Origin: Laetmonice hystrix
Lineage: Eukaryota
Reading direction: 5' to 3'
Assembly: GCA_965235115.1 (NCBI GenBank)
Contig: OZ249438.1
Span: 24,180,001 to 24,244,000, forward strand
DNA: 64,000 nt
Shown here: in pieces, positions 1 through 26,795 of the stretch
Layout of the letters: every line of letters begins with the position of its first letter
Numbering within the stretch: position 1 is the first letter of the stretch
Program-made: the position numbers and the translations under genes
The notes under the pieces: model-generated
What the model was told of the DNA's origin: nothing
Databases searched by the model: none
The model's input: the letters and a program-made list of their open reading frames with translations, nothing else

Positions 1-3000
1 ATCATGCCCTGTACTTGTCTCTGGCGGGTTCCCTTGTCCCTCACTGTCCAGGGTTTCCTGTCCCTCCGGCTTGACACCGTTTCCTGTCATTGTCTTTGGT
101 TGGTCCTGGCGTTCACTGCCTGGGCCCTCTTGTCCTTCTATGTTTGTATCATGCCCTGTACTTGTCTCTGGTGGGTTCCGTTGTTCCTCACTGTCGGGGG
201 TTTCCTGTCCTTCCGGCTGGGCATCGTTTCCTGCCCTCTTTGGTTGGTCCTCCCGACCCTCACTGTCAGGATCCTCCTGTCCCTCCGCTCGAGAACTGTT
301 TCCTGCCCTCTTTGGTTGGTCCTCCCGACCCTCACTGGCAGGATCCTCCTGTCCCTCCGCTCGAGAACTGTTTCCTGCCCTCTTTGGTTGGTCCTCCCGA
401 CCCTCACTGGCAGGATCCTCCCGTCCCTCTGCTCGGGAACTGTTTCCTGCCCTCTTTGGTTGGTCCTCCTGGCCCTCACTGGCAGGATCCTCCTGTCCCT
501 CCGCCCGAGAACTGTTTCCTGCCCTCTTTGGTTGGTCCTCCTGGCCCTCACTGGCAGGATCCTCCCGTCCCTCCGCCCGAGAACTGTTTCCTGCCCTCTT
601 TGGTTGGTCCTCCTGGCCCTCACTGGCAGGATCCTCCTGTCCCTCCGCTCGAGAACTGTTTCCTGCCCTCTTTGGTTGGTCCTCCTGGCCCTCACTGGCA
701 GGATCCTCCTGTCCCTCCGCCCAAGAACTGTTTCCTGCCCTCTTTGGTTGGTCCTCCTGGCCCTCAATGACAGGTTCCTTCTTCTCCGTCTGGACCTCCT
801 CTGCTTCCATGTTTTGCGCACCGGGCTGTTCACTGCCTACATGAGATAATTCTGCGTCATCGTTTTCCTTTTCGTGGGAGTTTCTTTCAGTTGATTCCTC
901 GTCTGTCCTTTCGCCTGTGGTTACGTCAGCTGTGGTTACGTCAGCTGTGGTTACGTCAGCTGTGGTTACGTCAGCTGTGGTTACGTCAGCTGTGGTTACG
1001 TCAGCTGTGGTTACGTCAGCTGTGGTTACGTCAGGGGCCGGTCTGCTCTCTCCCAGGTCCCCAGATTCTGATATCGTACTCCGTTCAGTTAGAATCATGG
1101 CGCTTTCCTCTCCACCATGGACGGTCCGGGTAACCAGGGACTGCTGGCTCCTGGCCCGGTCCCGAGGTCCGTTATTGTCGACTCCGTCCCCGGTGACGAC
1201 TCCGGCTGGGGCAGCGGCAAGGCCCGTGCCCATGCAGCCTCCGAGCAGCAAGAGCGCTATGTCATCGGTCATCTTTAAGTCGGCTACTTCTTCCAGTGGG
1301 GCTGGTCTATACGGGAAAAGAAAAGTCATGCGTTTGGGTACTTTGGGTACAAACATTAACACATCTCCGTATAAAACGTGTCAGATACATTTAGTTTTAT
1401 GGTTAGGATTCTAAAAGGAGAATCTTATCAAGGCCTAGCAAGAACTCAAACCTTCCCAGTAAATTAGTACGGCTAAATTAATATGAAAGAATAATCTATT
1501 TCATTTCATAAAGAAAAGAGACAGGAGTTTCCTTTATTACTGAGAATACACTGAATAGTCCCATGTACGGTTATCGGTGAGCATAGTATTTATTTTCTGC
1601 CGAAATTATCATGATAGAGGCATCTCTTCGCGAATACTTCTTTTTTTTACCTATTAATCACACAGACCTGAAGTTATCCGTTCAGGTCACAACATAATCA
1701 CGTGAGATATCGGTATCATACTGTAAGCATTATATCACAGTCTTTTGTTTTTATCACAGTGATAGACAATACTGTTATGAGCTAATAATATACCTAATCA
1801 TTTATGAGGGTTTTCCAACCAAATGTGTCTTATGTAGGCTGTACAGTAAAGAGCATACACAGACGCCGAGACAAGCGCTAACGAGCAGGGGTGTAGGTAG
1901 CTACTGGCCTCCCATTGTACATTATAGTAAAACTAACAATAGGAAACGCGGTATAAAAGCTACTGCATTCCTACACCACATGACAGGCTTGAGGCACGAG
2001 TGAACTTTTTAATTTACACCTTCGTACACATGATACTCGTTCCCTACATACTACTACTAATATAAATATAACTGTTGTTTTCTACAACGTATATACATAA
2101 TATATGGATATGCCTATAAATGTAGCCACTATAACATTGATGTCCTTCTACCAAGGATTGCAAGGAGACAGCAGGAAGATCAGCATTGCCTGGCGCACAT
2201 ATACGCAATTATAAATAAGACAAGAAACTGTAGCACACAGATCTACTATAGATACTACTGATGACTAGTCATATCTCCCACGCCAGTGTAGTAGTTCTCC
2301 CTAAAGAAAGTTTGGGAATGAGACATCTAGGTCTTAATAACATGCCCAGTTGTTATAAAGAGGAAGGATCCTGGCTGGCTGCCTGTGCCACTCTTCCAGA
2401 TATAAAAGGTCAAAATGGATAAATGCCGGTACTCCTTTTTAATTTATCCATCAGGATTGCATGTACATGCACCTAGACTGTTTTGTTTATAGACAACGGT
2501 TAGGGAGGGGGCTGCTTGATGAATCAGCTTTAAAGGCAGGGACAACACCCACGGCAAATAAGGTTTCGTAGACCAAATGAAACACCAGCATTTACCTTAG
2601 GGCAATAAATGCCACAATTGCGTTGTCTTAATGAAGTAATTAACGTGTAACCGCCCGATATGTGACGCCGCTGGTTCTTACCTTGACCTTCTTGTGTGTT
2701 CATCGGAGCCGAATGCTGCACACCGCGGCGTATTGCGTAACACTACGTGTTACGCTGCTCACAAACCTTGTCTACACGATGTTTGGAGTCCCAACGTTTG
2801 TAAACGTCCGAGGTGTTGAACACACAAGCAGAACCAGCGGCGTCACACATCGGGCGTTTACACGTTTATTACTTCATTCAGACTACGTAATTGTGGCATT
2901 TATTGCCCTGAGGTAAATGCTGGTGTTTCATACGGTCTACGAAACCTTATTTGCCATGGGTGTTTTCCATCCCTTTAACTACACATGGCGAGAAAGAACA

Positions 3001-6000
3001 TGCAATAGAACATATTTCTATACACTTATCTACGACAATAATTTGATAACGGTCGTCTACAACATAAGCTTAGGTTCGCCCACAGAACTGTAGGTGAGAG
3101 GAATGAAGGCCTACATAGGTAGTTGGGTTTTCACGACATGCGGATCACAATAAACATTCAAGGATTGAGCGGAGAGACGTGGGTACAGCAGACGTCACCA
3201 TCACCGGGCAGCAGCGGGCAGACGACCAGTCACGTAGTCCGAACACCGTCTCTTACTTGGGAACGTGACCAGTGATGATTGCCAGTATGATCCGCTTGAA
3301 GTCGCCACTGCATTCACTCTCAACATCCGCCTCCAAACTCTTCCCGTACAGCTCTTCGTAACGCGTCTTAATGTCCTCCAAGTCCACCTAGTGCAGAAAA
3401 CAGGAACTAGCCTTCACAACCTGGAACATTACTTTTTGAAATTCATGTAGGTCCTGTCAAGACTGGCCGTGTGCGGGCCCTGCAGCCTTTGTTCTCTCTC
3501 CTCTCCAACACTGCATGGTGTGTTATTTTCCCCCAAATTGCCCGGGGACAAGTTCTAACTAGCCTGGAATAAAGGCTGCTGCCCCCCCCCCCCCGCCAAT
3601 ATTTATAAAATGACCGCATGGGTCAATGCAAAACCATAGGCATAAGTCATTGTGCGTCACTTCTGCCCCCCCCCCCCAATATTTTTTTCCTTCCTACACT
3701 ACTGCAGTGTAAATATGGGATCAATGATGCCGTGAAAGTCCTATACTCAATAACAAGTGATAGTATAGGAGGGAGAAGATGTTGAATGTGAACGGACCTC
3801 TGACCGGGAGACGATGATATTGGCCAACATCTTCTCGTCTGTTCCCAGACCACGCATGGTTTCATGGAGCTGGCGGGTAAAATACGACACCGGCTCTCCA
3901 AGACATTCCACTGTAAACGAAACGGACATGTATGTAGGCCAAGGGGTGCTGCCGAGGGCGGGGGACACCCCCCCCCCCCCCACACACACACACACTTTTA
4001 AGGCGGCCTAAAAATTAAGGTAAAATACCTTTGGCAATTAGGCCTCACCAGATCTGAAGGAAATGGTCAAGCATTACGTCATTACAAGCAATTTATATTC
4101 CCGTGCGATGCCATTTTTATCCATATGAATAAAAACGGTAGAATTACGATAACTGGTTACGATAAAACCATGTCTAATCGATGCCGCTATCGGCGGCCGA
4201 GGTCTGGTGTCAGTACAAACAGTCCAAGGTTCCTTACCAAGCCCAATTATAGCCGCCTCACTGTCTCCAAGCTTGGCCGCCTTGATTCCATCCACCAGCT
4301 CCTCGCCTGACAGCTACAAGAGGCCAGTATTCTTGGTAATATGCAGAATAAAGAAGTAATATGCCTTTCTGGTATGCATATTTAAGTAAACAAACATGTA
4401 TGCATGGTACAATATACCATCTTTCAATACAGGACCCTTCAATGGGAATCAACCGTTGATAGGCCTAACCTTTCCATTGATTGGCTTCACCCACTCACCT
4501 TCTTGAATTCCGTACAAAAGCTCCTAAACTGGGCCCTATTACTGGTGGCCAAGACTTCCACAAAGATGTCCTCGGTCAGCGTCAGGCTGGTGCTTCCATT
4601 CTGTACCGTGGCAAAAAGTCCTTCTAATAAATACTTAACGAACAATCTCGATAAACTAGAAATGATCCGAGTGTACATGTATATATAATATAAAATGGCC
4701 CAGAGAGAGGAAGAGGGTTTTATTGAAGACTAACATTGAAAAGTTTGTCGGCATCCTGGCGAGCCTTGTCCTCGTTGACGCGGTCCGTCAGATCGCGGTT
4801 CTTTTTGATCATCTCGGATACAAAGTTATAGAAGTCGGAGCCCTCGCCCTTCAGGTCATCCTCAAACTCGGTCTTGTAAGCTGGAAGGTGCAATATCATC
4901 AGGGGAAATAAAAACTGTACCTAATACAGAGATTTTCACACGCTCTAACCACACGCGTTCCTCCCGTGTGTGTATCATTAACCGGGAAAATATAATAGAA
5001 ATTAATTGTACTCACACTCTTTGTATTTCGTTATGGCGGCATCTAATTCCTGTAAGAAAATTGCAAGTTAAAATGCATTAGAAGCCTGTAGGGGATTTCT
5101 ACAGATACGGCAATATGATTTCTGGTTTATAACAGTACGTTTATGGCATACTTTCAGACAGAATTAGACGCTCATCCCACCCTGCTATCATATTGTAAAA
5201 GGAGGTAAAGCATATCAAATCTATGAAGTGGCCTAGATGATTGGAACCGAGTTACGATATGAGACTGGCCTCTCGTGATCTGTGACAGAGGATGTTGTTT
5301 AGGAGAGGGTTGCCCTCCTTGAGGTCCTCGAGCGTGTCCCTCATGACGGCCGCGTCCTGGTCTACCGGCTCAGCCATCAGAGCCACGACCACCTGCTCAA
5401 AGTCACCGCGCAGCTCTGACTCCAGCTCGGCGCGCAGGTCCTACAGCGACCGGAAGACAATGTAAACATTACACTCTCTCATGGTGGAGAACATCAAACA
5501 ATGGTTGTTGGAATGACAGGTGAAGGAAAAGGTCAATGAGCCACTTACGGCAGCTTTGGTATAAACAGAGCTCTGGGTGACCTTTGGTTTTCAGTGGTAT
5601 ATAAGAAATCATACATGCTAAATGTTTAGGTTAGAGCAAACTGGATCACCCAGCAGGTATTCTAGTGTCAACTGTTATCCCTGGTCTCAATCGATCCAAT
5701 ATTGACCCCCAACGTAACACTATCTATGGGCTCCGTATTAGCTTTCATATCGACCACTTGGACAGCCGCTGGTTCGAGATGAGTAACGATTCTCAAGCCG
5801 CCCACCTTTCCAAACAGTCTGTTGTATGTTTGACAGATCGATCGACGTTGTTGGCTTGTCCTCTTAGAGAGCAGTGATATCAGGGCTGTCTCATCTGTGT
5901 CTGGCGAAACAGGAGCAAAATCTCATCACTCTATTCGTTCAAATATTTCTTATATAAAGGTCTCGAATTTACGCCAACAATAAATGCCTTTAGCAGTATA

Positions 6001-9000
6001 AGAAGGAGAATTGGAGTTATAACTGAATTGTCCCGACTTGGCATATTTTAAAGGGATGCATATAGGGGTGGAATGGGTGTCGTACTTACTCCAACCTTTG
6101 ATGGCCGTCACTATGGTTTCAACGTCTTGTTCGGGCGAAGCGTCCGGGTTCTCTTGGATTGTTCCACGTGTTGGTGTCTACAAACATAACTAACCATATA
6201 CAAACAACGAGCGAGGGAAGGATGAGGTCGAGTGCCTCCTTATACTGCGTCCCCACCATGGCAACCCCTCCCGGATACGGTTATAATCAAACAGTCAACT
6301 GCTGACCTTGAAGATGTCAAAGAATTACCATTCCCGCACAATATGAAATAGATTCAGACGCTCCTGTTCATCTCTGCAAAAACTTATTGGTGCTTAAACA
6401 AAACAAAGTTCTACACACTGACATAGGACACGTGTCTTATCCAACAGTCGGCCTATAGGCCTTCAACTTACGTAAGGCCTTGTCAGCCTGGTGTCGGCCT
6501 GGTCATTGTTGCTGCCGGGTCTCGCCCTCTCGTTCTCCTTACCGATCCCTGGCTCCTCAGTTTCAGCTGTCTTGGAATCAACAACTTCCTCATACTTCTC
6601 GTCTGGTTTTACCTTTTGTCGAGAATTCTTGACTTTCTGCATCCTTCTCGATTTCGACTCGGGTTTATTCTTAGTTTCTGGAGGAACAGGTTTCCTGGAC
6701 TCAGCTTTGAGGGCGGGCTCCGTTTTGCTGTCATTTCTCTTTGGAGATTTGCTTTTGCTTCTCTTTTGTTGCGGTCGTTGTGTGGGGCCTGCGGCGGGGG
6801 TCTTTTTGGGCGTCGTTCTGGGTGTTGACCTTTGACTGACCGGGCTCGGGTCCCGCTGTCTATAACTGGCCCTGGGCTGCTTCTTCTGTGGCTCAGTCGG
6901 GTCCTCTCTACATGATCAGTTTAAACATACTTATAACTAGTGTCACATATCATTGTTGTTAGTTTGTTGAAGGTTGTAAGCATATCAAATATACCCACCC
7001 ATACTGTCTATTGAAAGCTGGTCACAATTGACAAAGGACAATTCTAAAGCTATAGTATTTTTCTCTCGTTTATTAGCTAAAATTTTTACGAATGGGTTTT
7101 AGCTGTGGAAACAGGCCAGCAGGATTAGGCCTACCGTATACTTGTCATACGGTAGATGGAAAGCGCAGATTGAGTTTGTTTACACCTTCCAGTCAATCGC
7201 CATGCATATGTAAAATATTTCATAATTCATTACTACATAATATCTGCAACTTAATATACCTCTGTATTTCTGAAATCGTACTATATAGGCGCGGGAACCA
7301 AGTGTAGGAGGTAGGCTTCCACCATTGTTAACCCTTTGAACCCCCATCCTACTGTGAGGCCAAATTATAAATACCGGCACTAAATCTATATGCAATAATT
7401 GTATAAGCAAAGATTTGTAAACACGATATGATATAATTGTATACAGGTATCACAGGTTCATTATATCACAGTCTTTGAGATAACAGCCCTCATCTTGATA
7501 ACACCAGACAATGATTCCCAATGATATTTTATTAATGCAACTGTCTGAAGTAAAATCAAATTTATGCCAAATGTCCACCATTACCATTAGGTTAGAATTT
7601 TTCTCTCTCTAATAAAAAAAAATGAATAGGAAACTCTAGTTGAAAGTTGATTTTGTAGCTAGAATAATGCAGAAAACACTCACTTCAGAGTGACTGTGTA
7701 TGCCTTGATATCATACTTTTAGACCATACACATCCTCAACTCAAATTTTCCAAATGTTCGTAAATCTAAGTACCAAGTACCTTGGCGGGTGGTCGTATCT
7801 AGCACGTATACGCCCGACCACTGAGCAGAGACACGGTCGGCAAGTTGGACAAACCTCTGATACATGCAGGTGGGATTGTTGGCCCCTTAAGTCAATGCTA
7901 CATACATCTACATACAACATGGAAGACACATTTTGAAGGAAATTATGAAGTACGGTCAAGGTGGTGCTGGACCTTATTGATGTTTCCTCCTGATTTAAAT
8001 ACAACTTTTCATATACTACTTACTATCAAAAAAGTGTATCCTGATTTTAATACAACTTTTCATATACTACTTACTATCAAAAAAATGTTGTCCTGTTTTA
8101 TATATATACAACTTGTCATATACTACTTACGGTCAGCACATTTTGAAAAGATATCCATCAGCATGTAGCTGTGGGCTTCCTCGCTTCCCAAACATTTGTA
8201 TGCTATCGGCCTTTTACCGTACAAGTGCCATTAAGCCACTTTCACATAGATCACATGGACGACACTGTTACAAACAACTCATTATCATGCTTACTATATA
8301 AACACAACAACACCAATACAATACAACGTGTAAGCCAGTTCAGTTGTCAACGGATAGAAATGTAAAATTATAAAATGTGTTCCTGTATCTAAGTCTTTAG
8401 ATGCATACTTTGGTTAACTATGACAGTCCACCATTTCAATAAGCCTTTGTGTACCTGTAGGCCTACACTAGTATGCTGACCAGCAGTATGTCACTACACT
8501 ATTGGTGATCGGTATCACCATGGTCCGTCTTTACACCCATGCAGAAACAAGTGAACCGACTCAGAATGTACGTGCACTGTCACAGAGTGTGCTTCCTGAA
8601 CGTTCTATCGCGCATGCTGGGTTGAAGATTGTGCAAACACCACGCACTACGGACTGCCGCCACCAGATGGCGTCCTTGTATGCATGCAAGTCGATGCTCG
8701 TGCAGTCCAACTTAGCTGAATCACGTGACAGCGTGAGCAAAAAGAAATGTCCAGCTTACTTTTCCTTCACAATAGCCAATAACAGCTTCTTATAGTCTCC
8801 TGAACATTCGGTCGAGATGCTTTCTTCCAGACTCTTGTTGTACAGGCGTTTGTATATGGATTTGATTTCCGCAAGGTCGACCTGGAATGAGAAGGGAGAA
8901 TACATGTATAATAAGTATTTTTTTTCTTTTCACCCGCAGTCGCGTATCCAGGGGTGGCGTAAAGCAAATGTCCCCAAGGGCCCTTACAAAACAGGATTCA

Positions 9001-12000
9001 ACCCCGAAAACGATCTCCCCTACCTGTTTGCCCCAAGCACGGGAACACACTGCCCCCCCCCCCCCTGATCTGGGATAAAATCTTTAACTTAGACTGATTT
9101 CTGAACTACTGGGAGTGTGTATGAAAGGCTTGGAGATGATGTGAGGGTGGGGCTAGTGGAGTAGGTCCACCTACCTCCGACCTGGAGACGGTGTGAGGGT
9201 GGGGCTAGTGGAGTAGGTCCACCTACCTCCGACCTGGAGAAGGTGTGAGGGTGGGGCTAGTGGAGTAGGTCCACCTACCTCCGACCTGGAGATGGTGTGA
9301 GGGTGGGGCTAGTGGAGTAGGTCCACCTACCTCCGACCTGGAGATGGTGTGAGGGTGGGGCTAGTGGAGTAGGTCCACCTACCTCCGACCTGGAGATGGT
9401 GTGAGGGTGGGGCTAGTGGAGTAGGTCCACCTACCTCCGACCTGGAGATGGTGTGAGGGTGGGGCTAGTGGAGTAGGTCCACCTACCTCCGACCTGGAGA
9501 TGGTGTGAGGGTGGGGCTAGTGGAGTAGGTCCACCTACCTCCGACCTGGAGATGGTGTGAGGGTGGGGCTAGTGGAGTAGGTCCACCTACCTCCGACCTG
9601 GAGAAGGTGTGAGGGTGGGGCTAGTGGAGTAGGTCCACCTACCTCTGACCTGGAGACTACAATCCGGATGAGCATCTTGTCGTCGGTGCCCACCCCGGAC
9701 ATTGCTCCATGCAGTCGACGTGCGAAGAACTCGGACGGCTCTTGGATGGCGTCAGCTGGAGTAACAGACCGGCCAAGGTCAGACAAACCACGTCAAGGTC
9801 AGGTACGCACGGCCTCAACAGGTCAGGGGGTCAAAGGGCGAAAGGAGGAACCCGAGTGTATGAAAACACGTCGACAGACATAGGCAGGACATAGGGCCCG
9901 AGGTATGTTGGCAATCAGGAAATCGGACGGGGAACTGTTCACTTAGAAGGAAAACACCGAACTCACACATACCCAGTGCTATGTAACCTTCTTGGGTATC
10001 GCCTGCCAACCCCTTCTGGATGCGTTCCTTGAGAGTTTGTCCAGACAGCTGAGAAGGGGAAGAGAAAGTTTATCGAGTCATTACAGTGACTTAGGCAATA
10101 CTGACTCCACCATGGTTCATAATCGGCCTACATGCACATTGAACACGAGAAGCGGGACACCCAGAGTGGGAACTAAATGTACAACTGTCCGCTCAATGAC
10201 TCCAAAGCTCTGGGTCTAAGAGAATGAAATCACCTTCTTGTACTCGGCAGAGACCGCTTGGATATGACTGCGACTCCTTTTCGTCATTACGTCAATAAAT
10301 ATGTCATCCTTCAGCAAGTTCCCGTTCGTCGATTCCTATGATTTCACGACAAGCAAAGTTTGTCAACTTGTAACCTAAAAATCACCATTATATAACTGCA
10401 CCCCCTTACCTCCCGGGTCTAAGTTAGGGTAATTCACTAAGCCAAACTAGAACACTCCCTCTAATGTTACCTTAGCCTCGACATACGAAGACGTCAATTA
10501 TTATTATGTTCGTATTGAATTGATCTCTGCAGGCATGTATATTTTCGCTCAGTTACTGACCGTATGAAGTGCACTGACGTCTTCATCAACACGGGCACGG
10601 TCGACCTTGGTTGCTTCATCTCTATCCGCTTTGAGGATGTTGCCGAGAAGGTCAGCGAAGGCGCCGCTAGTCTCCGCTAGTACGGCCTTCTCTAGGTCCT
10701 TCTCATACATCTGCTCGTACTGGGCCGAGATGGCCTTCAGTTCCTGCACATAAACCGATCGCTAACTTATTTCTGGAGGACTTTTCTTTTGTTTATAAAC
10801 CAAAGAATTCGATTGATCTGACATCTTATAGTACAAACACAAATCATTCCAACTTAAACAAGTGTATACTTATCTTAAATACACATCAGAGTAAGAACTA
10901 TCAAGATTACGATACGGTCCTTAATGTAGGCCGTGGTTGTTGATGTGAGAGTGCACAAAGTACAGTATAGGCCCACTTATAGCCACCTGACGTTTGATGT
11001 GAGAAGTGCTGTGTCGAGTGGATTCAGAAATACTTGAGAGATAAGAGGCATACCTTGGGAGAACGGGTGGTGAGAATACCGATCAGGGTGTCCTCCTGTG
11101 TGCCCAACCCTGACATGGCACCATGGAGGCAATAGGCGTCATACTCTGGAGGTGCCATCACCAGCGCTACCATAGTCTCCTCTAGGTCCCCACTTAGCTC
11201 AGACTTGAGCTCTTCTAGGAGATCCTGCAATAGCCAATAACTACCATTAATACAGTGTGGGGGCGGCGCTGTCTGGCAGTATTTGCACTTGGAAGTTCAA
11301 CCAATTTAGGATATTTTCATTAAGCTAACATATTTTACAATAATTACGATATGTTACCAAAATAATGAAGTTGAATAGGAATACTGACGTTACCTTTTTA
11401 TACATTTCCTGGTACCTGGTCCGTATCTGTTGGCGTTGGTCGTTGGTCCGCCCGGTGAGGATCTCGATGAGCGGGTCGTCGTCCGTTCCGAACCCCTTCA
11501 TGGCCTCAGCCAGCCGTCTCGCGTCCTCGTCCGGGTTGAAATTACTGGCTGCTTTCGTCGTCCCTTTCACCGGCTATAGGGAAGGAAACCGTAAATATGG
11601 AGTCTACACTAATAGTTTGACTTACTGCAGTACAAGTTTGCAATCATCGCATGGAATAACAGTTTGGTAGAACCGAGTTGGCTTTAAGCCAGGAATCCAT
11701 ATGTTCGTAGTGCGTATTGCGTAGTGCGTCATCAAAACAATAAAAACACGCATTACGCACTACGCACACATGGAATCACTCCAACTTGTTTTCATTGATT
11801 TTGATGAATGCGCATACGCACTACGCAGTACACATGGATTGTAAAGCCTGATGACCGTGTACCCCTGTTCCTTACCTTCCTCTTGGTGCCCGCCGGGCCA
11901 CCAGTCGTGATGGGTTGTTTGTCCTTGCCACCCTTGGTGACCACCTTCTTATCAAGCTTGTCCTGAGCCTCCCCCTTTATGCGCTCGCCGATAGGTCGTT

Positions 12001-15000
12001 TCTGAGGCTCCATGAACGGGTTGCCCGTGCTGAACTCGGGCTTCTTGGGCTCGAACGACTTCAGAGGTTGTTTCTTACGGGGACCGCGTATTACCATACC
12101 GTTCACCCTCCTGGGCTTGGACGGGTCCTGGACAGAGAGAGACACACAACGGGCATAATTAAATCTCAGTAACAATTACTGGTAGGTGGACTGCCTGCAT
12201 GGTGAGAACCATTCACGCAAAGGTTATTGTTAATATGATCAGCGCCAGCTGCACGTAGATTCTACGTGCAGGGTGTGCATGGTGTTAATATGATCAGCAA
12301 CAGCTGCACGTACGGTAGGATGTACATGGTTACCACTGACAATGAGTGCCTGGTGCTAAATAAAATGTATTCGGGTTAACGCTAGCCACCCAATTCACAC
12401 CCGCTGGATTCGCCCACGCAAGTACTACATGTGTAGTACTGCTTTATGACATTGAAAAGGTTTAACGTACAGTTCTACTCTCACACATCACCATATGCAG
12501 ACAGGACTTCAAGCGAAAATATGACATCAAGGGCGCACAAACACCATAAACATAACGTTATGGAGATGTTTACTGTTCATACTTCAGGCACTGTCATTGG
12601 AAGCAGTGTTGTCTTGACAAAATGTCCGCGCACCTCTGGTTTAGCCTGTACGGCTTGCCGTGGTGGTTTAGCTGCACGGTGCGTGCCGGCCCCGCCGCCG
12701 GCCCCAGCCCCAGCACCGCCCCGGGCGGCGATCTGGGCGATAAGCGGGCCCGCCTCGCGGCCACACTTGGCTGTGACGTCATCGACCAACTCCGCGCCGT
12801 ACTTCCGCCTGGGTAAAGAAGCGCAACCAACGTTAACTAACACTTGACAAACAGATAGGCCGTACATGTATGCCTACTTCGTTTTCTAACTTTAATCTCT
12901 AAATTTTATGAAGAAAACACCCGTTTTAACGCATGGGAATCCGAATAAGATCAGATTGTCAACTTTCGGATCTTTCTCTGAACTTCTTCAATCTCTGAGG
13001 AGGAAACTCACCTGTAGGAGCGTCTGATGGAAGCCATCTGAGCGTCTGACCGGTCCAAGAGAGTGACCACCAACTCCGAGTTGTTCGGCTTTAGCAATGA
13101 GTGCACCTTCTCCGCCCAGTAGGCACTGTCCTTCTCCAAAGACATTTCTGCGCCGTCGAATATATCAAAACGTATAAGGAATGAAACGAATTACTGCAAG
13201 GAAATTGCCTGCATATCGTATCTATTTGAAATTTTGTACAGACTTTAGATATGTGAGGGAGTGGCGGACAGAGTGTTAGATATGAACTGACCGAGTGCCT
13301 CGAGTGCCCTCACGTACTCGGCCGAGCAGTTGTCCTCTGTGGCGGCGGCCGTTACACCACTCCCTCCCGACACCTGGAGAACATAGCACATATATAAATT
13401 ATTCTGTTACATGCATGTTAAAACTTCTCATTCAAATACCTATAGCCATAAATAATACAGCTGTATAATATCTGAATCATGCAATGTTGTTTTCGTCACT
13501 TTGAAGCCAGCCTGTGTAGACATTGGCGCCGCCGTGTCACCCCCAGGGTTGGCGGCGGCTTAGTGTCGTCAGGCCGGGAGGGGTGTATGTCTACATGTGT
13601 CTCTCCCCCCCTGGAGGGGTTTATGTCTACATTGTGTCTGTCTCACCTGTCGATACGCTCCCAGGGTGGTCTGCAGCTGACTTGGGTTTCGCTCCGTAAG
13701 TAAGCAGATAAACTTTCCGTTGTTACTGCTGAACCTGCCTTCACCTGCCTGTAGCCAAGGAGACGTCATTTTTAATTTACGTTATTCCATGTAAATTTGA
13801 CGACCATGATATAAGTCCAGAAATATCACTAACAAAATCTAGTACAAAGTGTGATAAATAAACTTATCTGGTAATGTCTAATAACTGTGAGAAATTACAA
13901 ATAATCAGAGGGTATAGAAGACCCAGAGCCCTTCCCCGGGTTATAAGGCAGGCTCACGTACGTCAAGCAGCTGTTTGGCGTCTGTGTTGGCGAGGTCCTC
14001 GTCCACAGCGTCCGAGTCCGGTCGGTCGTGGAGCAGAGCCAGGAGTAAGACCCGACAGTCCTCCTCCACAATCCTCTCTCGGATGTCCTCCTCCAGCGAG
14101 ACGCCATACTCTGGATGGGACAGGGAATACGTCAGACATTGCTGCGAGATGGGATTAATGATGCAGCGGATCTATACAGAGGACCACAGACATTAGAGGG
14201 CCACAAACATTATACAGAGGGCCACAAACATTAGAGGGCCACAAACATTATACAGAGGGCCACAAACATTAGAGGGCCACAAACATTATACAGAGGGCCA
14301 CAAACATTAGAGGGCCACAAACATTATACAGAGGGCCACAAACATTATACAGAGGGCCCCAAACATTATACAGAGGGCCACAAACATTATACAGAGGGCC
14401 ACAAACATTAGAGGGCCACAAACATTAGAGGGCCACAAACATTATACAGAGGGCCACAAACATTAGAGGGCCACAAACATTATACAGAGGGCCACAAACA
14501 TTAGAGGGCCACAAACATTATACAGAGGGCCACAGACATTAGAGGGCCACAAACATTATACAGAGGGCCACAAACATTATACAGAGGGCCACAAACATTA
14601 TACAGAGGGCCGCAAACATTATACAGAGGGCCACAAATATTATACAGAGGGCTACAAACATTATACAGAGGACCACAAACATTATACAGAGGACCACAAA
14701 TATTATACAGAGGACCACAGACATTATACAGAGGGCCACAAACATTATACAGAGGGCCACAAACATTATACAGAGGGCTACAAACATTATACATGGAGCT
14801 ACAACTCAATCTACATACCTTTCTTGTAGCCCACACCGCATGCAGCTAGTGCCGACGAGCTGCGGCTCTGTAGGAACTCGACCAGGCTGACAACATCACC
14901 ACTCTGGAAAGATATCACTACATAATACAACACAGAGAAGGGAACTGTCTCATTTAGTGAGGTCTATGTTATGTAAGCAACCCGTTAGAAGATCGGTGCC

Positions 15001-16994
15001 GGGGGTGGAGGTCTCATGGCGGTGCGTGACGTACCTTTATGGCTTCGTTGATTTGACTGATATCGTCACGGCCGTCCTGATCAAGCAAAGACTCGATGAC
15101 AACGTCGTAACTTTGACCCATCGACTGCTTCAGTTCACGAGCAAGGTCCTGTCGACCAAAGGAAAATATACAAATGAGGTCATACCGACACATGTTAGCC
15201 AGGATATCCGTCATAGGCTAATCATGGCAAGATGGGAGCTCCCACAGAACGAGGTCCCTGAATGTAGTAAAAGAATAGGGAAATGAAACTTACCAGATCA
15301 TAGGCGTCCTCAAACTTCTTCTTCGTACGCAGGCGCTGTGAGTGTGAGCGTTTGATGAGCGTTTTGACGACAATGTCGTCTGCTTTGGCTGATAAAAACG
15401 ACATAGAACCATAATTATATTATGTCAAACAGGTCAAAGATTCACGCCAGGAGAGCGTATGGTGATATATGACAATGATTATCATATGTTGAACATCACT
15501 CAAAGTTATCAAGCCTATACTTACCCAGTCCTTTAACTGCTCTGAAAAGCTTTTTCGCATCTTGGTCAGTGATAGCGTCCTGAGAGAAAACAAGTGGAGT
15601 ATTATATTTCCTGGTTATTGGATGTTTGAATTCATTATCAGTTCTATTACCGCATTATTAAACCATCCGTTAATATCTACATCATCGTCATCATTACCAT
15701 CCCACATTATCACCATCATCATACTACATTATGGATAACCAATCCATTATACATATTACAAACCAATATTACCAGAAATATTTCAGTGCTATTGATAGTC
15801 ATCAGATGGCATTATTATCAAAGACACGGTCAATTTTTTCTGTGTTATAAATAATCAACTTCTCCTATATGCACGATCCCACAAAGGCACATTTCGTGAT
15901 ACCTACGTCCCAAGAGTGCATGACTAGAGGTATATAATACTGATTGTGAATAGTAATGTAGTTTTCCGAAGTTACCTTATATTTGGAAAAGTGATGCGAT
16001 AGTAATCAGAGAAAAAAGACAAATACGTGACAATAGACGATAACGGGGCTGATAGACGCCACGGCTTAGTTACACATCGATACGTGCTAATTTGGGTGTT
16101 GTCTGCAATCGCGTAAATGTATACAAGATTGTCCGTATAGCGTTACACAGAACTATTGCGCCTGTTCGAAAATGGCTTCCTTGCACAGGACTAAGGATTT
16201 TATCTGTCCTTCAACTGGAAAATACCTAAAGGTGCACGGACTTGGCAAGTTGTCAGCATGCAGGCGAAATTTAACCATGCAGATGTCATGCACGGTGACG
16301 CGGGGAGAGGGCAAGAAAAAACGATCGTCGGACTGCATGGCGCGCCGAGCGATTGCACTGCCAGAAGTGGCGTGCAAAGGTACGCTCACAACACCTGGAC
16401 CGGTGGGGCTCTCTACCTGTTAATTTGGAAAGTCTACCGGTAGGTTCCCTCCGGTAAAACAGATACAGTGAGGTATGTGTCGAGAAACAAATACCTCATA
16501 GAACGCGTGAATAAAGAAAACCTTTCCAATGTCAAATGTTAACTATACAAAAATACGTAAAACCACCTCAAGGTATGATTCGTTGCACGTTGTATGCCTA
16601 CACTAAAGTGCGTGAACGTTAAAGAAAATTGGTAAAGTCAAAAGCACACACGTGCAATGTGTTCCCAAGGGAGGTATTAAAACAAGGCGGGTATAACCTC
16701 GCTTGTTTGTTTGGATGCGCTGTCCTCCTCCTCGCCAGAACTACTTCCAAGCGACGTCTCAGCACCGCTGTCAGACGGGCCGTCCTTATTGCGTGCTTTT
16801 AGAGACATGGCGCCGTCATTCTCGTTGTTTGGCGAGCTTCTCTCTGTTCTTTGACTCGGTCGATCCCGGCTACCGACCGACTTTTCATGTTTACCCGTTT
16901 TTCTTGTACCGTGTGAAGCGGGCGTGTCTTTGTCAGAGTCAGAATGAGAGGGTGTGGAGTTGGTCTTTGGTTGTTTGTTGTATTCCCTCGGGTA
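1..16994 (-). CDS. Giant multi-exon annexin: 12 annexin repeats (3 tetrads), charged linkers and an acidic repeat tail; partial, runs off the left edge
   Basis: 29 phase-compatible exons in transcript order: 16698-16994, 15525-15579, 15294-15388, 15035-15148, 14819-14903, 13962-14110, 13647-13748, 13292-13373, 13012-13147, 12634-12808, 11876-12127, 11394-11573, 11054-11224, 10561-10743, 10234-10335, 9973-10048, 9643-9755, 8760-8881, 6472-6907, 6090-6177, 5806-5900, 5270-5440, 5016-5049, 4735-4880, 4499-4600, 4238-4313, 3798-3910, 3257-3387, <1-1306 (5,187 nt, 1,729 codons). All introns are GT-AG except one GC-AG. Annexin motifs include [36 protein letters not shown]|VDL and SECSGDFKRIILAI. 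Annexin identity is secure; that all exons join into one transcript is inferred from phase compatibility. Confidence 0.8.
229..775 (-). repeat. Coding 72-bp tandem repeat (~7.5 copies, 24 aa: AGNSSRAEGQEDPASEGQEDQPKR) in the annexin tail exon
   Basis: The unit recurs at 229, 301, 373 ... 661, 733. The minus frame is open across 1-1306. A further 147-bp period is seen at positions 1 and 148. Confidence 0.9.
915..1034 (-). repeat. Coding 15-bp tandem repeat x8 (TADVT pentapeptide)
   Basis: CTGTGGTTACGTCAG x8. Only the exon frame (ACA GCT GAC GTA ACC) is stop-free on the minus strand. Confidence 0.9.
3257..6177 (-). other. Annexin tetrad 3
   Basis: PTRGTIQENPDASPEQDVETIVTAIKGWNTDETALISLLSKRT ... 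DLRAELESELRGDFEQVVVAL ... [29 protein letters not shown] ... ESECSGDFKRIILAII. Confidence 0.93.
8760..11573 (-). other. Annexin tetrad 2 (most canonical core)
   Basis: [32 protein letters not shown] ... KSELSGDLEETMVAL ... [21 protein letters not shown] ... AETSGAF ... [29 protein letters not shown] ... STECSGDYKKLLLAIV. Confidence 0.95.
9132..9656. repeat. 52-bp minisatellite (~10 copies) overlapping an annexin exon end and splice donor
   Basis: Unit GGAGATGGTGTGAGGGTGGGGCTAGTGGAGTAGGTCCACCTACCTCCGACCT; the last copy merges into exon 9643-9755. Confidence 0.95.
11692..11842. repeat. Imperfect inverted repeat (MITE-like hairpin) with GCGTAGT/ACTACGC subrepeats
   Basis: The left arm aatccatatg..gcgtagtgcgtcatcaaaacaataaaaac matches the reverse complement of the right arm gttttcattgattttgatg..acgcactacgcagtacacatggatt. 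Confidence 0.55.
12634..15579 (-). other. Annexin tetrad 1 (divergent core)
   Basis: DAKKLFRAVKGLG..KRSHSQR..DLARELKQ; EYGVSLEEDIRE..LLLALL; DEDLANTDAKQLLD-AGEGRFSSNNGKFICLLTERNPSQL; SAYWAEKVHSLL..LLDRSDAQMASIRRSYRRKYGAELVDDV. It keeps the 102-nt repeat-3 exon seen in the other two tetrads. Confidence 0.75.
14170..14792. repeat. Intronic minisatellite of 21-bp and 17-bp unit variants
   Basis: ACATTATACAGAGGGCCACAA and ACATTAGAGGGCCACAA units fill most of intron 14111-14818. Confidence 0.95.
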
Positions 16995-19152: not shown

Positions 19153-20735
19153 TCATTTCTTTTCCTGGCAGTCAAAGCACTGATGCCATGCTGTCTAGTG
19201 AGCGCCCTCCACCGTAATAGTTGTTTGACCAGCCGGAAAAAAACTGGCAGGTAAGTGAGAGACACTGTAGTTAAGGGTGACCACGTGTATGGTATTAGTA
19301 GGCTACCGGTAATGTCTTTACCTTTGTAGTGCCATTGTTGTTTATCTTGGGAAGTTTGGTTACTGAGGAGGACGCGGCGTCATCTTTACCGCCCTGACCT
19401 CCCTCCTTCTTGTCCTGAATACAAACACACCTACCTGTGTATTCATATACATACAGGAAGAGAAATAACACCTGGCATGGAAAGTGTGAAACTGACCCGT
19501 ACAACACCCATAAACAGTCGGTGTCTGTGCATGCTGACAGATAATATCCAATTAGATATACGAAACTAAACATAATACTGATGGACATCTTCACATTGTC
19601 GAGGAAGTCTCATGTTCACTCATTATTATCACATCTTCACCAGCAGGCTACGATAAAAATAAATTTTCATAGTGTGTGCAGGTAGACTTACACTATCATA
19701 GACCGAAGACCTATGAAGCGAGCGGGACATAAGAAACCCTCACAGTAAACAAATTATTCCAGCAGCGATCAACTACTGAAAAAACTATATTCTGCACTTA
19801 GATGTTCTAGGTCTACTGTGGAACTTCTCGTAACCTGTATATGGTAAAATATGAGCCGACATCGACGATGTAATTCTCATCCTATATGTTTGATTGTAAA
19901 CCTTACAGTGTAATTTGGAGCAGGTAAGAGTACTCACAATGAAGGGTAGGTATGAGTGCACGCTCACATGTTTACGATCACCACCATCACCAACTTCATC
20001 CTCATCATGACCAAAATCAGAGTCACAATGGGATTCCTTAGGAATACAAGAAGCGCACACACAACACATTTACAGAGGGCAGTTACACACATCATATGTA
20101 CAATGTTCGGTGAGGGTGGTCGTATACACATAGTTTCAGAGAATCTTGAGGTTTCTACGCTATACGTGCTCTACGCATGCTGTGAACAGAACATGGATAA
20201 CATAGGCATGCCCATCATATTCATCCTAATTAATAGTAAATTAACATTGGGCAATGGTAGAGTCTAGGACTTAATCCATTTTTCCATCTGCATGAAGACC
20301 AGAGACTATATATTTGATATTAAAGGAGATATATTAGGGAAAGCTAGCATTGTTTGTGGAGAGAAACCAGAATTGGTCAAGCGAGAGAATATGAACTTTG
20401 AGGATCATAAAACTATCCATCTTATAAAACTAGAGTCCGCTAAGTAGTGTATACATAATTCAATTTTTTTCTGAATTCATTTTCAAGCAATGGTATAATA
20501 AAGTATTTAGGAACAGCCAATGAAAGGGTATTTTTGCTATTCTCTGCTTTTTGCTTTCAAAAATGACGATTATTGTAATAGCGCCCCAAGACACGGCTAG
20601 GGTTTACATAATCATGTTGGGTTTATACATAGCTACAGCCAGCACTTCAATACATTGGGCTTTGAAATTCTTTTCTAAAGCAAGAACATCTTTCGCGATA
20701 TAACCACTGAGTCTACTTACCAGAGGCGGCAGTCG
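19153..20735 (-). CDS. Low-complexity coding exons (RLPPL microexon; ESHCDSDFGHDEDEVGDGGDRKH; DKKEGGQGGKDDAASSSVTKLPKINNNGTTK); probable tail of the CFAP97-domain gene or of the 21.3-22.4 kb exon chain
   Basis: Phase 0-0 exons 20721-20735, 19968-20036 and 19322-19414, all with canonical AG/GT. Downstream acceptors open exons at 19243 or 19164, and both lead to a stop. Gene assignment is uncertain. Confidence 0.5.
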
Positions 20736-21346: not shown

Positions 21347-22371
21347 GTTAGGAATTGCATGGCGAATCTACAGTGATTGGTGGTTCCTGTGAAATTGGAA
21401 ACACATAGGCCCAATACTATCGTTTATGTTGGTAAAATTTATCGCTCTGCAAGGTAACTGTATGTGCCCTACAAACAAGCCCAGTCTGGACTAAATCTGA
21501 TAAATCCTATCTCTAACTCAATCCAGGAACATGTGTATGTATACATCGGTATCATTCTGTAATAAGTCACTTACAATAACGTTTTGCAATAATTTCAACA
21601 TTACCTCATAGGAAGTAGTTTTCTTTGGCATTGTGCCCCTTGGAGTGCTGATGGAGAAGTCCTTGGCTGACTGTTTCCACAAACCTTGTAAATATGACCT
21701 TTTTTCGAACTGTTGTTCCTTTAAAAGGAGAAAATATTGCAAAATATTGGACATTGAATCCTTTATCGTTGAATCGAACCCAATTGAATCTAAGAAACAT
21801 TCAATGGGGTCACATTAAAGGTGATGTCTGTATGCAAGATGTACCTGTGTGATGCCGCCCAACGATAGTCACACTGATGGCATGATCCACGTCATATCCA
21901 GAAAACCTGATGGTCAGGGTGCCCACCTTAAGTCTCACATCATCTGGACTGCAGGACCAGGCGACAAACCAAAGCGGAGACTGCCTAGGTCATTCACAGA
22001 CCATCACCCGCTAGAAAACGGTTCCAAAGACTCGTCCAGCAAACAGCATCGACCCACTGAGAGAAAGTGGCGGAGAGGCTGGCTGCTACCGACCACCTGC
22101 ATCCTCTAGTTCAATGCACCTGTGTTGTGAGGGTGGCTGCGGTTTGTCTCCTCCGCCGGTATACGCCGGGGGAGGATGTGACCACCCGCGTGGCACCGCC
22201 AGTACGGCCAGCGGCAGGATCAGTACCGGACACAACAGTAATTAGAATCACCGCACGGCCCTGGTGACAATAGACATCACCGTACGGCCCTGGTGACAAT
22301 AGACATCACCGTACGGCAAGGTGACAATAGAGATAACTGTTGTCATGGAGGTTTACCTGCCGCTCTGCCAT
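21347..22371 (-). CDS. Exon chain of unknown product, possibly a small secreted protein (MAERQVLILPLAVLAVPRGWS-HPPP...) or a continuation of the CFAP97-domain gene
   Basis: Phase-compatible exons 22357-22371 (or -22401), 22120-22226, 21845-21948, 21605-21684, and optional terminal exon 21347-21386 (EPPITVDSPCNS*). The acceptor before 22226 reads CG rather than AG. Confidence 0.45.
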
Positions 22372-24152: not shown

Positions 24153-26795
24153 CATATCGTTGGCACTGTAGTATGGCTTCACAGACTCCAGCTTGCGTGC
24201 GATGCTAACGTTCTTCTCGGCAATGTCCATCTGCTCCCTCTCTCTGATCAACTGGTTCATGCTGTTAGTACAAAGTGAAAGGACGCAGTCATGTGTTAAT
24301 AGGTATTCGCTTCTTATTTGGTTATATGCCACATAGAAGTATTTGATAGCACTAGACCTCTCTGGTTAGCATGGTTAGCGCTGATACCTGTACCGGTAAT
24401 ATGTACGCAACAACACATTTCGTAGATATACACTTCTATGTCCAAGCTTTCGTTTTGTGTTTGACGGTGTCGGTAGGTGCGTGATATCCATATATTGAAA
24501 CCGATATTTCATTATCTCGTATAATAAGCAGGGATCATTATAGACCTGCTATACATCCTGCTATGTTACATAAAGGTAGTCATGGCTTCACATAATTCAG
24601 TGGTTGCTACATGCGACCTAATTATATTATAAACAGGCATGTTGACTTAACTCTAGGCCCTAATAACACCAAAATTTGGATTGAAAGCGTAGAACGTATA
24701 AAGGCGTGACATTATGATGTAATTCCGTGTATGTATGTCTAGTATTAATGTGTTTCACGATAGTAGAAGTTAGTTCTAAAAGATATTATCAAAAAAAGAA
24801 CTTTCTGAAAAACATGTGCCGACTTTGGATAGATTGGCGCAATTAGAAAAAAAGCAGAGTCCAATCTACAATTATGATTAGAGGAATAAAAATAAAGGGA
24901 CAAAAGGGTGCATGTTAGCCGGCATTGTATAGTATATGATGATTTTTGAAAACTCGATCAGATATCCATTGCGTAAGGAGGAACAATTATTAAAATCACC
25001 GATGGGTGTCTAATCTATAGTTCAAGAAAAAATATTTACCTTTCATTGCTTTTTCTTTTAAAATCAATACATTGTACATTAACAACATATCTTCACAATA
25101 ACATTTGTGATCCTAATGACGTCGTGGATAAGGCCATGTCTATCATTACATGATAGTCCGGGGAGGGATGTTACCTAAGTTTGTTGGTGGAGGTTTCATA
25201 AACAGGAGCCACCGGTGTGGTTAGAGATCAGGGCCCAGTACGTAAAAACCTAAGATCTTGCTTAAGCTTAAGCTTAAGCTTAGCGCTTCTGATTGACTGA
25301 TCTAAGAAGACCAACCAATCAGAACCATTAAGCTTAAGCTTAAGCAGGATCTTAAGTTCTAACGAACTGGGCCCAGACCATAGATTTATACATTTTGCTT
25401 TTGGATGGGTACAGGTATAGGAAAATATTCAAGGGATAGACCATGAGGAGTGGGGAGTGAGGAGTATACCTCATTTGGCGGTAGTCATTCCAGTTGTCTA
25501 CTTGGCCTTTCCTTTTGAGGATCCAAGTCATCCTCTGCAGTAGGATCTGGTTATCCTTATCGATTTCTGCCTGCTTTTGTTCTTCCATCTACAAAATGAA
25601 CAAAAAGGTATTAATAATACAGACAGAGGAAATGGAATATAACCATGAATGTAGTTTCTATAAGCCACGGATTTACTTGAGTTTGAGTTACTCTATCAAT
25701 CAGTGAATTTATTCTATCCACCATGTAGCCAAGTAGGCCCCCATACCTGGATCTTCTTCAGCCGTAGTACCATGTGGGGGTACACCTTGGGAGGCTGGGT
25801 GTTCAGCTTGGGTCCAACCTGGTGAACCTAGAATACAACAGTTTATATATCATGGGTCTAACCAGAACACTCAGGTACATTTAGGAGAGTTTTGTATTTG
25901 AAACATGAGGAAAATTAGCTAAAGGTTTTACTAGATTAAATATTTTTTTAAACCTTTCGAATAATATTGAACAGGTTCTACACGTAGCAGGGGCGCATCC
26001 AGGATTTTGCAACTGGAGGGGTAACATCCAGGATTTTGCAACGGGGGGGGGGGGCTTGATGTATGTATAAAACCTCTTAGACACACTGTAAAATGATAAC
26101 CCTGGAGTCAGGGGGTCTAAGCCCCCTGCTGGATCCGCCACTGCGTAATCTGTGCGGCATATCACTGAACAGCTGCAAAACAGAACGCAGGTAGCGATGA
26201 CACTGACTGATTCATTCGGTTTCGATATATGTCACCAGGTAGCAGCACCTGTCCCTCGGAGTAATCGTGCAGCTCGCAAAAGCTGCATGAGCATGTAATG
26301 ATTAACGTATTGTATCTTATTCTGAATGAATTATCTTCTAAAGCTGAGAGTCGTCGAAAGCTCATGATCAGCCTCAACACTGTACGCCCTCACTATCCTT
26401 TTCGGGGGTCGTTTTATCATATTTCTCTAATATCAGACCCGGGGGGGGGGGGCTCCCGTTGATTTTAATGGATGATTGAGAGACATCGCTACATAAACAA
26501 CATAATCCCTACTGCTGCCCTCGCAGTGAACGTCCTGTAGGCCTACTATAGAGGTCGTCGTAATTAGGACAGTACGATCTACCATGAATCTAACAGCTAT
26601 TATACTAATTAAAATTTATTAGGCTGCCAGGGAAGTGCTATGAGGTGCTGAAATGCCAGACACACGGATGTACTGGCCGACGTTTTGATGGCCGGAGAGA
26701 CTTACCTTCTGAACGTGCAGCTTCATTTTTCGTTCCTCCCATTTCTTATCTATCAGCTTGCTGCAGGAGGGGAAACTGGAGGATTGGAGCGGCAT
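24153..26795 (-). CDS. CFAP97/KIAA1430-domain protein (CFAP97D1/D2-like, cilia/flagella associated); 3' end unresolved
   Basis: Exons 26706-26795, 25747-25827, 25470-25588 and 24153-24261 give MPLQSSSFPSCSKLIDKKWEERKMKLHVQK-VHQVGPKLNTQPPKVYPHMVLRLKKIQ-MEEQKQAEIDKDNQILLQRMTWILKRKGQVDNWNDYRQMS-MNQLIREREQMDIAEKNVSIARKLESVKPYYSANDM. This matches the family pattern (PP..Y.H..LKLKK.Q.EE.R...I.RDN..LL..M..I...G.VDN.N). A likely 5'UTR exon ends near 27160. Confidence 0.85.
25231..25374. mobile_element. Short palindromic MITE (PIF/Harbinger-like GGGCCC termini)
   Basis: GGGCCCAGTACGT..CTAAGATCTTGCTTAAGCTTAAGCTT is inverted at the right end, with (CTTAAG)n subrepeats. It sits in an intron of the CFAP97-domain gene. 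Confidence 0.7.
25988..26143. mobile_element. MITE of the CAGTGGCGGATCCAG / poly-G family; related partial copies near 8938, 32700, 35383 and 62645
   Basis: TIR CAGGGGCGCATCCAG ... CTGGATCCGCCACTG with G/C runs. No clear TSD. Confidence 0.55.

Follow-up and report, generated by a model that had tools for sequence, protein, structure and literature searches.

A Laetmonice hystrix locus that probably encodes a CFAP97-headed annexin with at least 12 repeats

A 64,000-nucleotide stretch of the Laetmonice hystrix genome (GenBank assembly GCA_965235115.1, contig OZ249438.1, positions 24,180,001 to 24,244,000 of the forward strand; hereafter the window) was analysed to follow up an earlier note that had proposed a many-repeat annexin gene from the sequence. 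All positions are given in window coordinates and the gene lies on the minus strand. The window does not contain any N. Annexin-like peptides in the six-frame listing were confined to the minus strand, and an annexin-repeat hidden Markov model (HMM) trained on the family, run on all six-frame stop-free pieces of the 64 kb, matched only that strand, between 15654 and 3256. The locus is read here as probably a single gene, extending from an ATG at 26795 to beyond window position 1 and encoding a Hemingway/CFAP97 head, a low-complexity spacer, three four-repeat annexin cores (tetrads) and a long acidic repeat exon, and as an orthologue within a family with a putative tether role. For annotation, it is best called one gene from 26795 to past the window edge, not an annexin from 16994.

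GT/AG pairs were enumerated between coding anchors, which gave one consistent exon chain. Between 15723 and window position 1, the spliced model comprises 1654 codons with zero stops and carries 12 annexin repeats in three groups of four, each with an independent E value of at most 3e-5 (repeat HMM). In tblastn, proteins from Haliotis, Mytilus and Mercenaria followed the minus strand in colinear order over 26795 to 3274. Both these alignments and the model give the order of parts that defines the family, with a CFAP97 head, a divergent tetrad 1 devoid of calcium sites and then ordinary tetrads. The three cores in one frame that the earlier note had described, with linker exons at 12808-12634, 12127-11876 and 6907-6472, were reproduced by splice-site enumeration and the repeat HMM, as was its count of 12 repeats on the spliced protein, and the annexin-type leaders of tetrads 2 and 3 are present as described; this part of the note is confirmed well beyond what chance would give. 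Its placing of the opening of the region at 16994 has to be revised, as the gene starts about 10 kb upstream, at 26795, with a CFAP97 head that had been missed, and the exon at 16994 is itself doubtful.

A head profile was built from the first 150 residues of the orthologues and matched the spliced head with E = 8e-53 over 145 residues. Exon 3 alone exceeds the Pfam cut-off for PF13879, a domain that the orthologues carry at 60-74 bits. When searched against the PDB, the head profile matched 8snb_4T (CFAP97; 3e-35), 9v10_Aa (5e-29) and 8otz_Z (1e-28), both CFAP97D1, and 9e2g_4R (1.5e-20), and a homologue in 9e78 was also matched. Downstream of the head the phases conflict: that of exon 7 is 0 at its end, the Ser/Lys-rich open reading frame (ORF) of 297 bases at 16994 is phase 0-0 and the exon at 15723 needs phase 2. 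The exon at 16994-16698 has the poorest splice sites of the whole model. An alternative donor at 16882 (5.2 bits, phase 2) would fit the 15723 exon but would truncate the 297-base ORF, and no credible candidate for an exon leading from phase 0 to phase 2 was found between 19321 and 15724. Because no credible exon joins this phase gap, the 5' spacer of the model is incomplete.

Annexin repeats, which are about 68 residues long, were scored on single exons with Pfam PF00191 (gathering cut-off 25 bits). Eight single exons scored above the cut-off, five in tetrad 2 (60, 51.6, 32.2, 34.4 and 43.9 bits) and three in tetrad 3 (29, 28.6 and 44.3 bits). Tetrad 1 remained below it, with a best exon of 14.4 bits, but a profile made from the tetrad-1 regions of orthologues covers solved annexin cores of the PDB over their whole length (E = 1e-60 to 1e-118). 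The leader reads P-V-K-G-T...D-E-D-A in tetrad 2 and P-T-R-G-T...E-Q-D-V in tetrad 3. Annexin cores bind acidic phospholipids via type II calcium sites, and the canonical form of this site (a G-x-G-T loop and an acidic residue about 38 positions later) is found in four of the 12 repeats, namely repeats 1, 2 and 4 of tetrad 2 and repeat 4 of tetrad 3. Repeat 1 of tetrad 3 is near-canonical (G-W-N-T), tetrad 1 is without any canonical site, and the tetrad-1 consensus of the orthologues likewise has no G-x-G-T loop. Three repeats of tetrad 3 score E = 1e-13 to 1e-27 and repeat 2 only 3e-5. Exon sizes are alike in tetrads 2 and 3 (171, 180/183, 102, 76 and 113 bases). The linkers, of 130 and 164 residues, are rich in Lys, Arg and Pro, and the tail is acidic, with at least 446 residues. 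An assembly duplication as the origin of tetrads 2 and 3 was ruled out, since their protein identity is only 36% and no DNA repeat is shared between them.

The junctions 12634 to 12127, 11876 to 11573, 8760 to 6907 and 6472 to 6177 are all in frame by splice-site enumeration. The fusion of tetrads 1 and 2 is firm, because there is no stop after tetrad 1, the linker has a strong acceptor and donor, and the first exon of tetrad 2 is without a start codon. Tetrads 2 and 3 are likely to be joined in the same messenger RNA, although this junction is unproven; the earlier note had ranked the two fusions in the same way and had called the acceptor at 6908 weak, in agreement with the 0.5 bits obtained here for 6907.

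Tetrad 2 ends at 8760 with the phase-2 donor AA/GTAAG (the slash marks the splice site), where read-through would give Lys-stop. Tetrad 2 of the Mactra gene, which is internal, ends in the same way, and the annotated product there runs past the donor-over-stop into tetrad 3. In Mactra antiquata the internal tetrad end reads AAT AA/GTAAGA, whereas the true last tetrad has a plain TAA and no donor (L001 67246-67365, 81659-81781). In the window, the ends of tetrads 2 and 3 both carry a donor over the stop and are of the internal type. Both ends of the tetrad-3 cassette (6907..3257) are in phase 2, so that it could be included or skipped without a frameshift, and an 8-repeat isoform ending at 8758 is possible alongside.

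On the 3' side, the junction 3257 to 1306 is in phase, and 1306 is the second-best acceptor of the model. The non-repetitive stretch 1306-840 is open in that one frame only, and the periods of the tandem repeats in exon 1..1306, 15 and 72 bases, are each divisible by three. The phase-2 donor at 3257, the strong in-phase acceptor at 1306 and the frame open to the edge argue that the gene very probably continues beyond window position 1, which would make 12 repeats a lower bound. Counts of AATAAA/ATTAAA after the two overlapped stops were no denser than the window average and are uninformative.

Table 1. Exons and related features of the gene model in window coordinates (a slash marks the splice site).
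Feature	Position	Strand	Remarks
Coding exon 1	26706..26795	-	ATG at 26795; N-terminus M-P-L-Q-S-S-S-F-P... matches orthologue N-termini; donor AAG/GTAAGT; in-frame stop upstream at 26855
Exon 2, Hemingway/CFAP97 domain	25747..25827	-	Orthologue alignment and head profile
Exon 3, CFAP97 domain core	25470..25588	-	Pfam PF13879 28.1 bits (cut-off 25.6); PDB 8snb_4T CFAP97 E = 1.2e-4
Exon 4, CFAP97 domain end	24153..24261	-	Orthologue alignment and head profile
Exon 5, conserved W-E-x-x-Y...L-W...K-D-F...T-P-R motif after domain	21605..21718	-	Donor uncertain: 21605 or 21575
Exon 6, acidic D-S-D-F-x-x-D-E-D motif, common to orthologues	19968..20036	-	
Exon 7, K-L-P-K-I motif, common to orthologues	19322..19414	-	
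Doubtful candidate Ser/Lys/Glu-rich spacer exon, phase 0-0	16698..16994	-	Weak acceptor and donor; phase misfit with next exon
Exon with M-W-D-G-N-D-D-D-D motif, preceding tetrad 1 in orthologues	15651..15723	-	Acceptor requires upstream exon ending in phase 2
Tetrad 1 repeat 1, exon a	15525..15579	-	First tetrad-1 exon; strong acceptor, no start codon
Tetrad 1 repeat 1, exon b	15294..15388	-	Pfam Annexin 14.4 bits
Tetrad 1 repeat 1 end and repeat 2 start	15035..15148	-	
Tetrad 1 repeat 2	14819..14903	-	
Tetrad 1 repeat 2 end and repeat 3 start	13962..14110	-	
Tetrad 1 repeat 3	13647..13748	-	
Tetrad 1 repeat 3 end	13292..13373	-	
Tetrad 1 repeat 4	13012..13147	-	
Tetrad 1 repeat 4 end, stop-free into Gly/Ala/Pro/Lys tail	12634..12808	-	Layout same in Mactra
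Linker exon of tetrads 1-2, Lys/Arg/Pro/Gly-rich, phase 0-0	11876..12127	-	Best acceptor of the gene, 13.7 bits
Tetrad 2 leader and repeat 1, G-F-G-T calcium loop	11394..11573	-	Pfam 60 bits; acceptor right after in-frame stop; no start codon
Tetrad 2 repeat 1 end and repeat 2 start (G-L-G-T)	11054..11224	-	Pfam 51.6 bits
Tetrad 2 repeat 2 end and repeat 3 start	10561..10743	-	Pfam 32.2 bits
Tetrad 2 repeat 3	10234..10335	-	
Tetrad 2 repeat 3 end	9973..10048	-	
Tetrad 2 repeat 4 (G-V-G-T)	9643..9755	-	Pfam 34.4 bits
Tetrad 2 repeat 4 end	8760..8881	-	Pfam 43.9 bits; donor AA/GTAAGC, phase 2
TAA overlapping 8760 donor	8756..8758	-	Unspliced protein would end here, 1-3 residues from 8-repeat orthologue ends
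Linker exon of tetrads 2-3, Lys/Pro/Ser/Thr/Arg-rich	6472..6907	-	Phase 2 entry, weak acceptor, one internal Met codon, no Pfam match
Tetrad 3 leader and repeat 1, exon a (K-G-W-N-T, near-canonical loop)	6090..6177	-	No start codon
Tetrad 3 repeat 1, exon b	5806..5900	-	Pfam 29 bits
Tetrad 3 repeat 1 end and repeat 2 start	5270..5440	-	Pfam 21.9 bits; sole in-frame donor at homologous position is the GC donor GAG/GCCAGT
Tetrad 3 rest of repeat 2 and repeat 3 start	4735..4914	-	Weak acceptor 4914; stronger 4880 out of phase
Tetrad 3 repeat 3	4499..4600	-	
Tetrad 3 repeat 3 end	4238..4313	-	
Tetrad 3 repeat 4 (G-L-G-T)	3798..3910	-	Pfam 28.6 bits
Tetrad 3 repeat 4 end	3257..3387	-	Pfam 44.3 bits; donor AA/GTAAGA, phase 2; TAA 3255-3253 overlaps donor, as at tetrad 2 end
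Probable next exon	1..1306	-	Acceptor 9.7 bits, matching phase; 435 open codons to window edge; acidic

Several introns of the gene hold minisatellites. The intron after exon 9755-9643 contains one at 9131..9656 (array about 9027-9754; 52 bases x 10, 98% alike), in which each 52-base unit copies the end of that exon together with its GAG/GTAGGT donor, leaving about ten extra good donors in the intron; as the period is not a multiple of three, use of most of the copied donors would shift the frame. Others lie inside tetrad 1 (14173-14793; 21/38 bases x 16-31) and between exon 7 and the 16994 exon (18301-19039; 49 bases x 15, 99% alike), and both are open in several frames and gave rise to long spurious ORFs in the ORF list. 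The intronic periods (52, 38/21, 49 and 51 bases) are mostly not multiples of three, in contrast to those of exon 1..1306. Of the two arrays in that exon, the one at 915-1034 (15 bases x 8, encoding D-V-T-T-A x 8) is 100% identical, which suggests a very recent expansion, and the one at 93-884 (72 bases x 8) encodes acidic units of 24 residues in frame. An inverted repeat (2530-2678 / 2830-2978) lies in the intron that separates tetrad 3 from the 1306 exon, with 149-base arms that are 91% complementary and 151 bases apart; the element at 2530-2978 looks like a small foldback insertion or one resembling a miniature inverted-repeat transposable element (MITE).

Outside the gene, tandem arrays were found at 44371-45094 (38 bases x 19), 50526-51700 (103/219 bases x 5-11) and 57070-57532 (42 bases x 11). 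Ten long ORFs between 27 and 64 kb gave no Pfam match and no transfer RNAs were found in the window, so that no second gene can be named there.

A number of observations weigh against a single gene with three fused tetrads. The acceptor at 6907 ranks only 55th among the 163 AGs of its intron, the TAA over the 8760 donor sits exactly where the 8-repeat orthologues terminate, and the linker exon 6907-6472 was unmatched among 5.8 billion proteins. The linker region is also purine-rich and open in two frames, and ORF length alone is therefore weak evidence. Within tetrad 3, keeping the frame across the repeat-2 intron takes a GC donor together with a weak acceptor, and the strong acceptor at 4880, 34 bases downstream of 4914, is out of phase. 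At the 5' end, exon 7 (19322), the 16994 exon and the 15723 exon were not joinable in phase with credible sites. For the odd tetrad-3 intron, a U12-type (AT-AC) reading was considered and dropped, as it would remove about 11 repeat residues and no branch-site match was seen by eye.

The alternative that survives best, although we consider it unlikely, is that the locus makes two products. The first would consist of the head and tetrads 1 and 2 (8 repeats, as in Mytilus and Ostrea) and end at the TAA at 8758, and tetrad 3 would be expressed from its own promoter, starting at the Met codon in the 6907-6472 exon, or as an isoform-limited 3' part. The overlap of stop and donor exactly at the 8-repeat orthologue end, the weak acceptor at 6907 and the ATG inside the linker exon fit such an arrangement, as does the greater divergence of tetrad 3, in which most calcium sites are gone and one intron is non-canonical. 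However, the identical donor-over-stop in Mactra marks an internal tetrad end in an annotated product that continues, and the same donor recurs where tetrad 3 ends, with an in-phase link to a strong acceptor, which is the signature of an internal cassette. Single products of 12-24 repeats are moreover annotated in eight other species. No credible intermediate exon was found between 8759 and 6908, nor a better promoter-proximal first exon.

It is very unlikely that tetrad 3 is a decaying duplicate no longer made as protein, with the 12-repeat frame as a historical leftover. The GC donor and weak acceptor needed in repeat 2, the unusually hydrophobic first 11 residues of exon 4914-4735, the modest repeat-2 score and the one canonical calcium site could be taken as signs of decay, but about 300 codons in 8 exons have stayed free of stops and frameshifts at 36% identity to tetrad 2, while none of 2000 neutral simulations remained open. 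Tetrad 3 has thus been under long-term selection; the strong scores of its other three repeats, its three exons above the Pfam cut-off and exon sizes equal to those of tetrad 2 likewise speak against decay. Equally improbable is that two distinct adjacent genes, one for the head and one for the annexins, have been merged by homology-guided reading and by the automatic annotation of relatives, since, even though the junction of exon 7 with the pre-tetrad-1 exon cannot be closed in phase and most relatives are automatic predictions, a single ORF without interruption spans the head and 8 annexin repeats in each of two intronless Logan contigs (3408 and 3710 bases), a strong acceptor opens the first tetrad-1 exon, in which a start codon is absent, and the same order is found from a cnidarian to molluscs.

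The probable single gene with three tetrads belongs to a wider family. When one exon was searched with phmmer against 1.84 billion representative proteins, the matches included many long annexins with multiple repeats, of which the Nematostella (1969 residues) and Haliotis (1447 residues) matches carry an N-terminal Hemingway/CFAP97 domain in Pfam. With the Haliotis protein as query, the same architecture was found in Haliotis (3 species), Gigantopelta, Aplysia, Elysia, Mytilus (4 species), Ostrea, Tegillarca, Potamilus, Solemya, Mactra, Mya, Mercenaria, Ruditapes and Nematostella. The repeat HMM counted 8 repeats in Mytilus, Ostrea, Tegillarca, Potamilus and Gigantopelta, 12 in Haliotis, Mactra and Mya, 16 in Mercenaria and Ruditapes, 20 in Aplysia, Elysia and one Nematostella isoform, and 24 in another Nematostella isoform. 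Members include Haliotis rufescens LOC124141953 (XP_046366104/5), Mya arenaria LOC128209531, Mercenaria LOC123536677 and Nematostella LOC5516017, and the relatives bear automatic names only, such as 'titin homolog' (Aplysia), 'annexin A6-like' (Mytilus) and 'Annexin A11' (Mactra antiquata). The Logan contigs are intronless and cDNA-like (cDNA, complementary DNA), which indicates that the head-annexin fusion is transcribed in other species.

The locus is, as far as its sequence can tell, an orthologue within this experimentally uncharacterised family, which is predicted in molluscs and Nematostella. Relatives with the same multi-tetrad architecture, which the earlier note had suggested looking for, are thus present, and its idea that a 12-repeat annexin would be new falls: 16 of the fetched proteins have at least 12 annexin repeats, 14 of them with the CFAP97 head, and so many existing relatives remove the novelty on the note's own terms. 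Literature searches on many-repeat, CFAP97-linked or molluscan annexins found no paper on CFAP97-headed poly-annexins, and molluscan annexins were given as then unknown in a 2013 survey. Per tetrad, the identity of the window protein to any relative reaches only about 35-52%.

A FastTree analysis of 49 tetrads was performed. Tetrad 1 of the window is orthologous to the tetrad 1 sequences of molluscs, grouping with them with a support of 1.0 and outside the gastropod and bivalve clade, and tetrads 2 and 3 fell within the clade of all later tetrads (support 0.93). The family clade was separated from ordinary annexins with a support of 0.97, Bradybaena and the ordinary annexins being placed outside. 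Later tetrads cluster by lineage, which points to repeated independent duplication of cassettes, and the tetrad number of the family (2 to 6) changes by duplicating a linker and tetrad together. The head-annexin fusion itself is old and is common to cnidarians and molluscs. Chains of 10-14 annexin repeats with different heads or none were also seen in Priapulus, a Logan protein, a EukProt protein, a JGI metagenome protein and the dinoflagellate Effrenium, and many-repeat annexins appear to have arisen several times.

The window protein was compared with known systems. With the CFAP97-headed poly-annexins it shares the N-terminal Hmw_CFAP97 domain, the spacer motifs (D-x-D-F, K-L-P-K-I and M-Y-W-G-D-like), the divergent tetrad 1 without calcium loops, the ordinary tetrads with a G-T-x-x-x-A...F/P leader and Lys-rich linkers, the exon layout and the phase-2 donor at internal tetrad ends, which is conserved; it differs from them by the long acidic repeat exon after tetrad 3. 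Annexin A6, the vertebrate octad (PDB 1avc, 1m9i), also has several complete four-repeat cores joined by a linker in one chain, and the tetrad-1 profile matches both annexin VI halves. However, annexin A6 has 8 repeats, a short linker and no CFAP97 head, whereas the window gene has three in-frame tetrads and not exactly two. Automatic 'annexin A6-like' names are no evidence of ANXA6 orthology, and because tetrads cluster by lineage, the multi-tetrad state here would come from duplications of its own. The head aligns over about 145 residues with CFAP97 in 8snb and CFAP97D1 in 8otz and 9v10, and in CFAP97D1 the domain stands at the very N-terminus, as in the window protein; CFAP97, CFAP97D1 and Drosophila Hemingway (PF13879) are, in contrast, 160-530 residues long and without annexin repeats. 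More than 8 repeats in one predicted chain are also found in Priapulus XP_014664979 (11-12 repeats, Fn3_assoc/CHB_HEX_C), in the Logan protein (EF-hand and 11 repeats) and in the Effrenium and EukProt proteins (10-14 repeats), but none of these has a CFAP97 head, and such chains fall outside the family where a tree was used to place them. Judged by its repeats and cores, the predicted protein is an annexin, by its domain a member of the CFAP97 family, and by its architecture and tetrad-1 orthology a CFAP97-headed poly-annexin and not an A6-type octad.

CFAP97D1 has been described as an external microtubule-associated protein of sperm doublets, bound with TSSK6 and EFCAB3, and its loss destabilises the outer doublets (PMC13066092, PMC13406575, PMC11779644, PMC7444823). 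Hemingway is required for Drosophila sperm flagella and for ciliary motility, according to work cited in PMC7444823 and PMC12310455. The head of the window protein would accordingly be expected to dock on the outer surface of axonemal doublet microtubules, like CFAP97D1 in solved sperm axonemes, and the annexin cores would attach to acidic phospholipids in the membrane of the cilium or flagellum. This attachment would depend on calcium via tetrad 2 (three sites) and tetrad 3 (one site), and the flexible chain on its disordered linkers would reach the membrane, forming a calcium-sensitive tether from axoneme to membrane. Such a tether is the best-supported mechanism; we infer localisation, binding and the tether role from domain content only. 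A point against it is that annexin cores without calcium sites, as in tetrad 1, may do something else. The bridging of several membranes, which the earlier note had put forward, is not suggested by the anatomy, in which calcium sites are present in only four of 12 repeats and in none of tetrad 1, and the head points to the axoneme. Bridges between microtubules and the membrane are a long-described feature of molluscan gill cilia, and their molecular identity is not known to have been settled, which is a lead and not a test.

A broader and much more tentative proposal, which we regard as doubtful, is that the family forms a calcium-sensitive bridge between doublets and membrane in animals without mammalian sperm accessory structures, the CFAP97 head being seated in its groove on the doublet. 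Tetrad number (2-6, at least 3 here) would then set the number of contacts and, via linkers of 130-450 residues, the reach, and would be tuned by duplication or alternative splicing of the phase-symmetric cassettes.

The repeat number itself is ordinary, given that public databases already list proteins with 12-24 annexin repeats, although solely as automatic predictions under misleading names. The interest rests on the whole family, in which a domain of the doublet-microtubule surface is fused to a variable string of membrane-binding annexin cores, and which offers a clean example of domain-number evolution through the duplication of splice-phase-compatible cassettes. If true, the tether would be a molecular candidate for the microtubule-membrane links in motile cilia and sperm tails.

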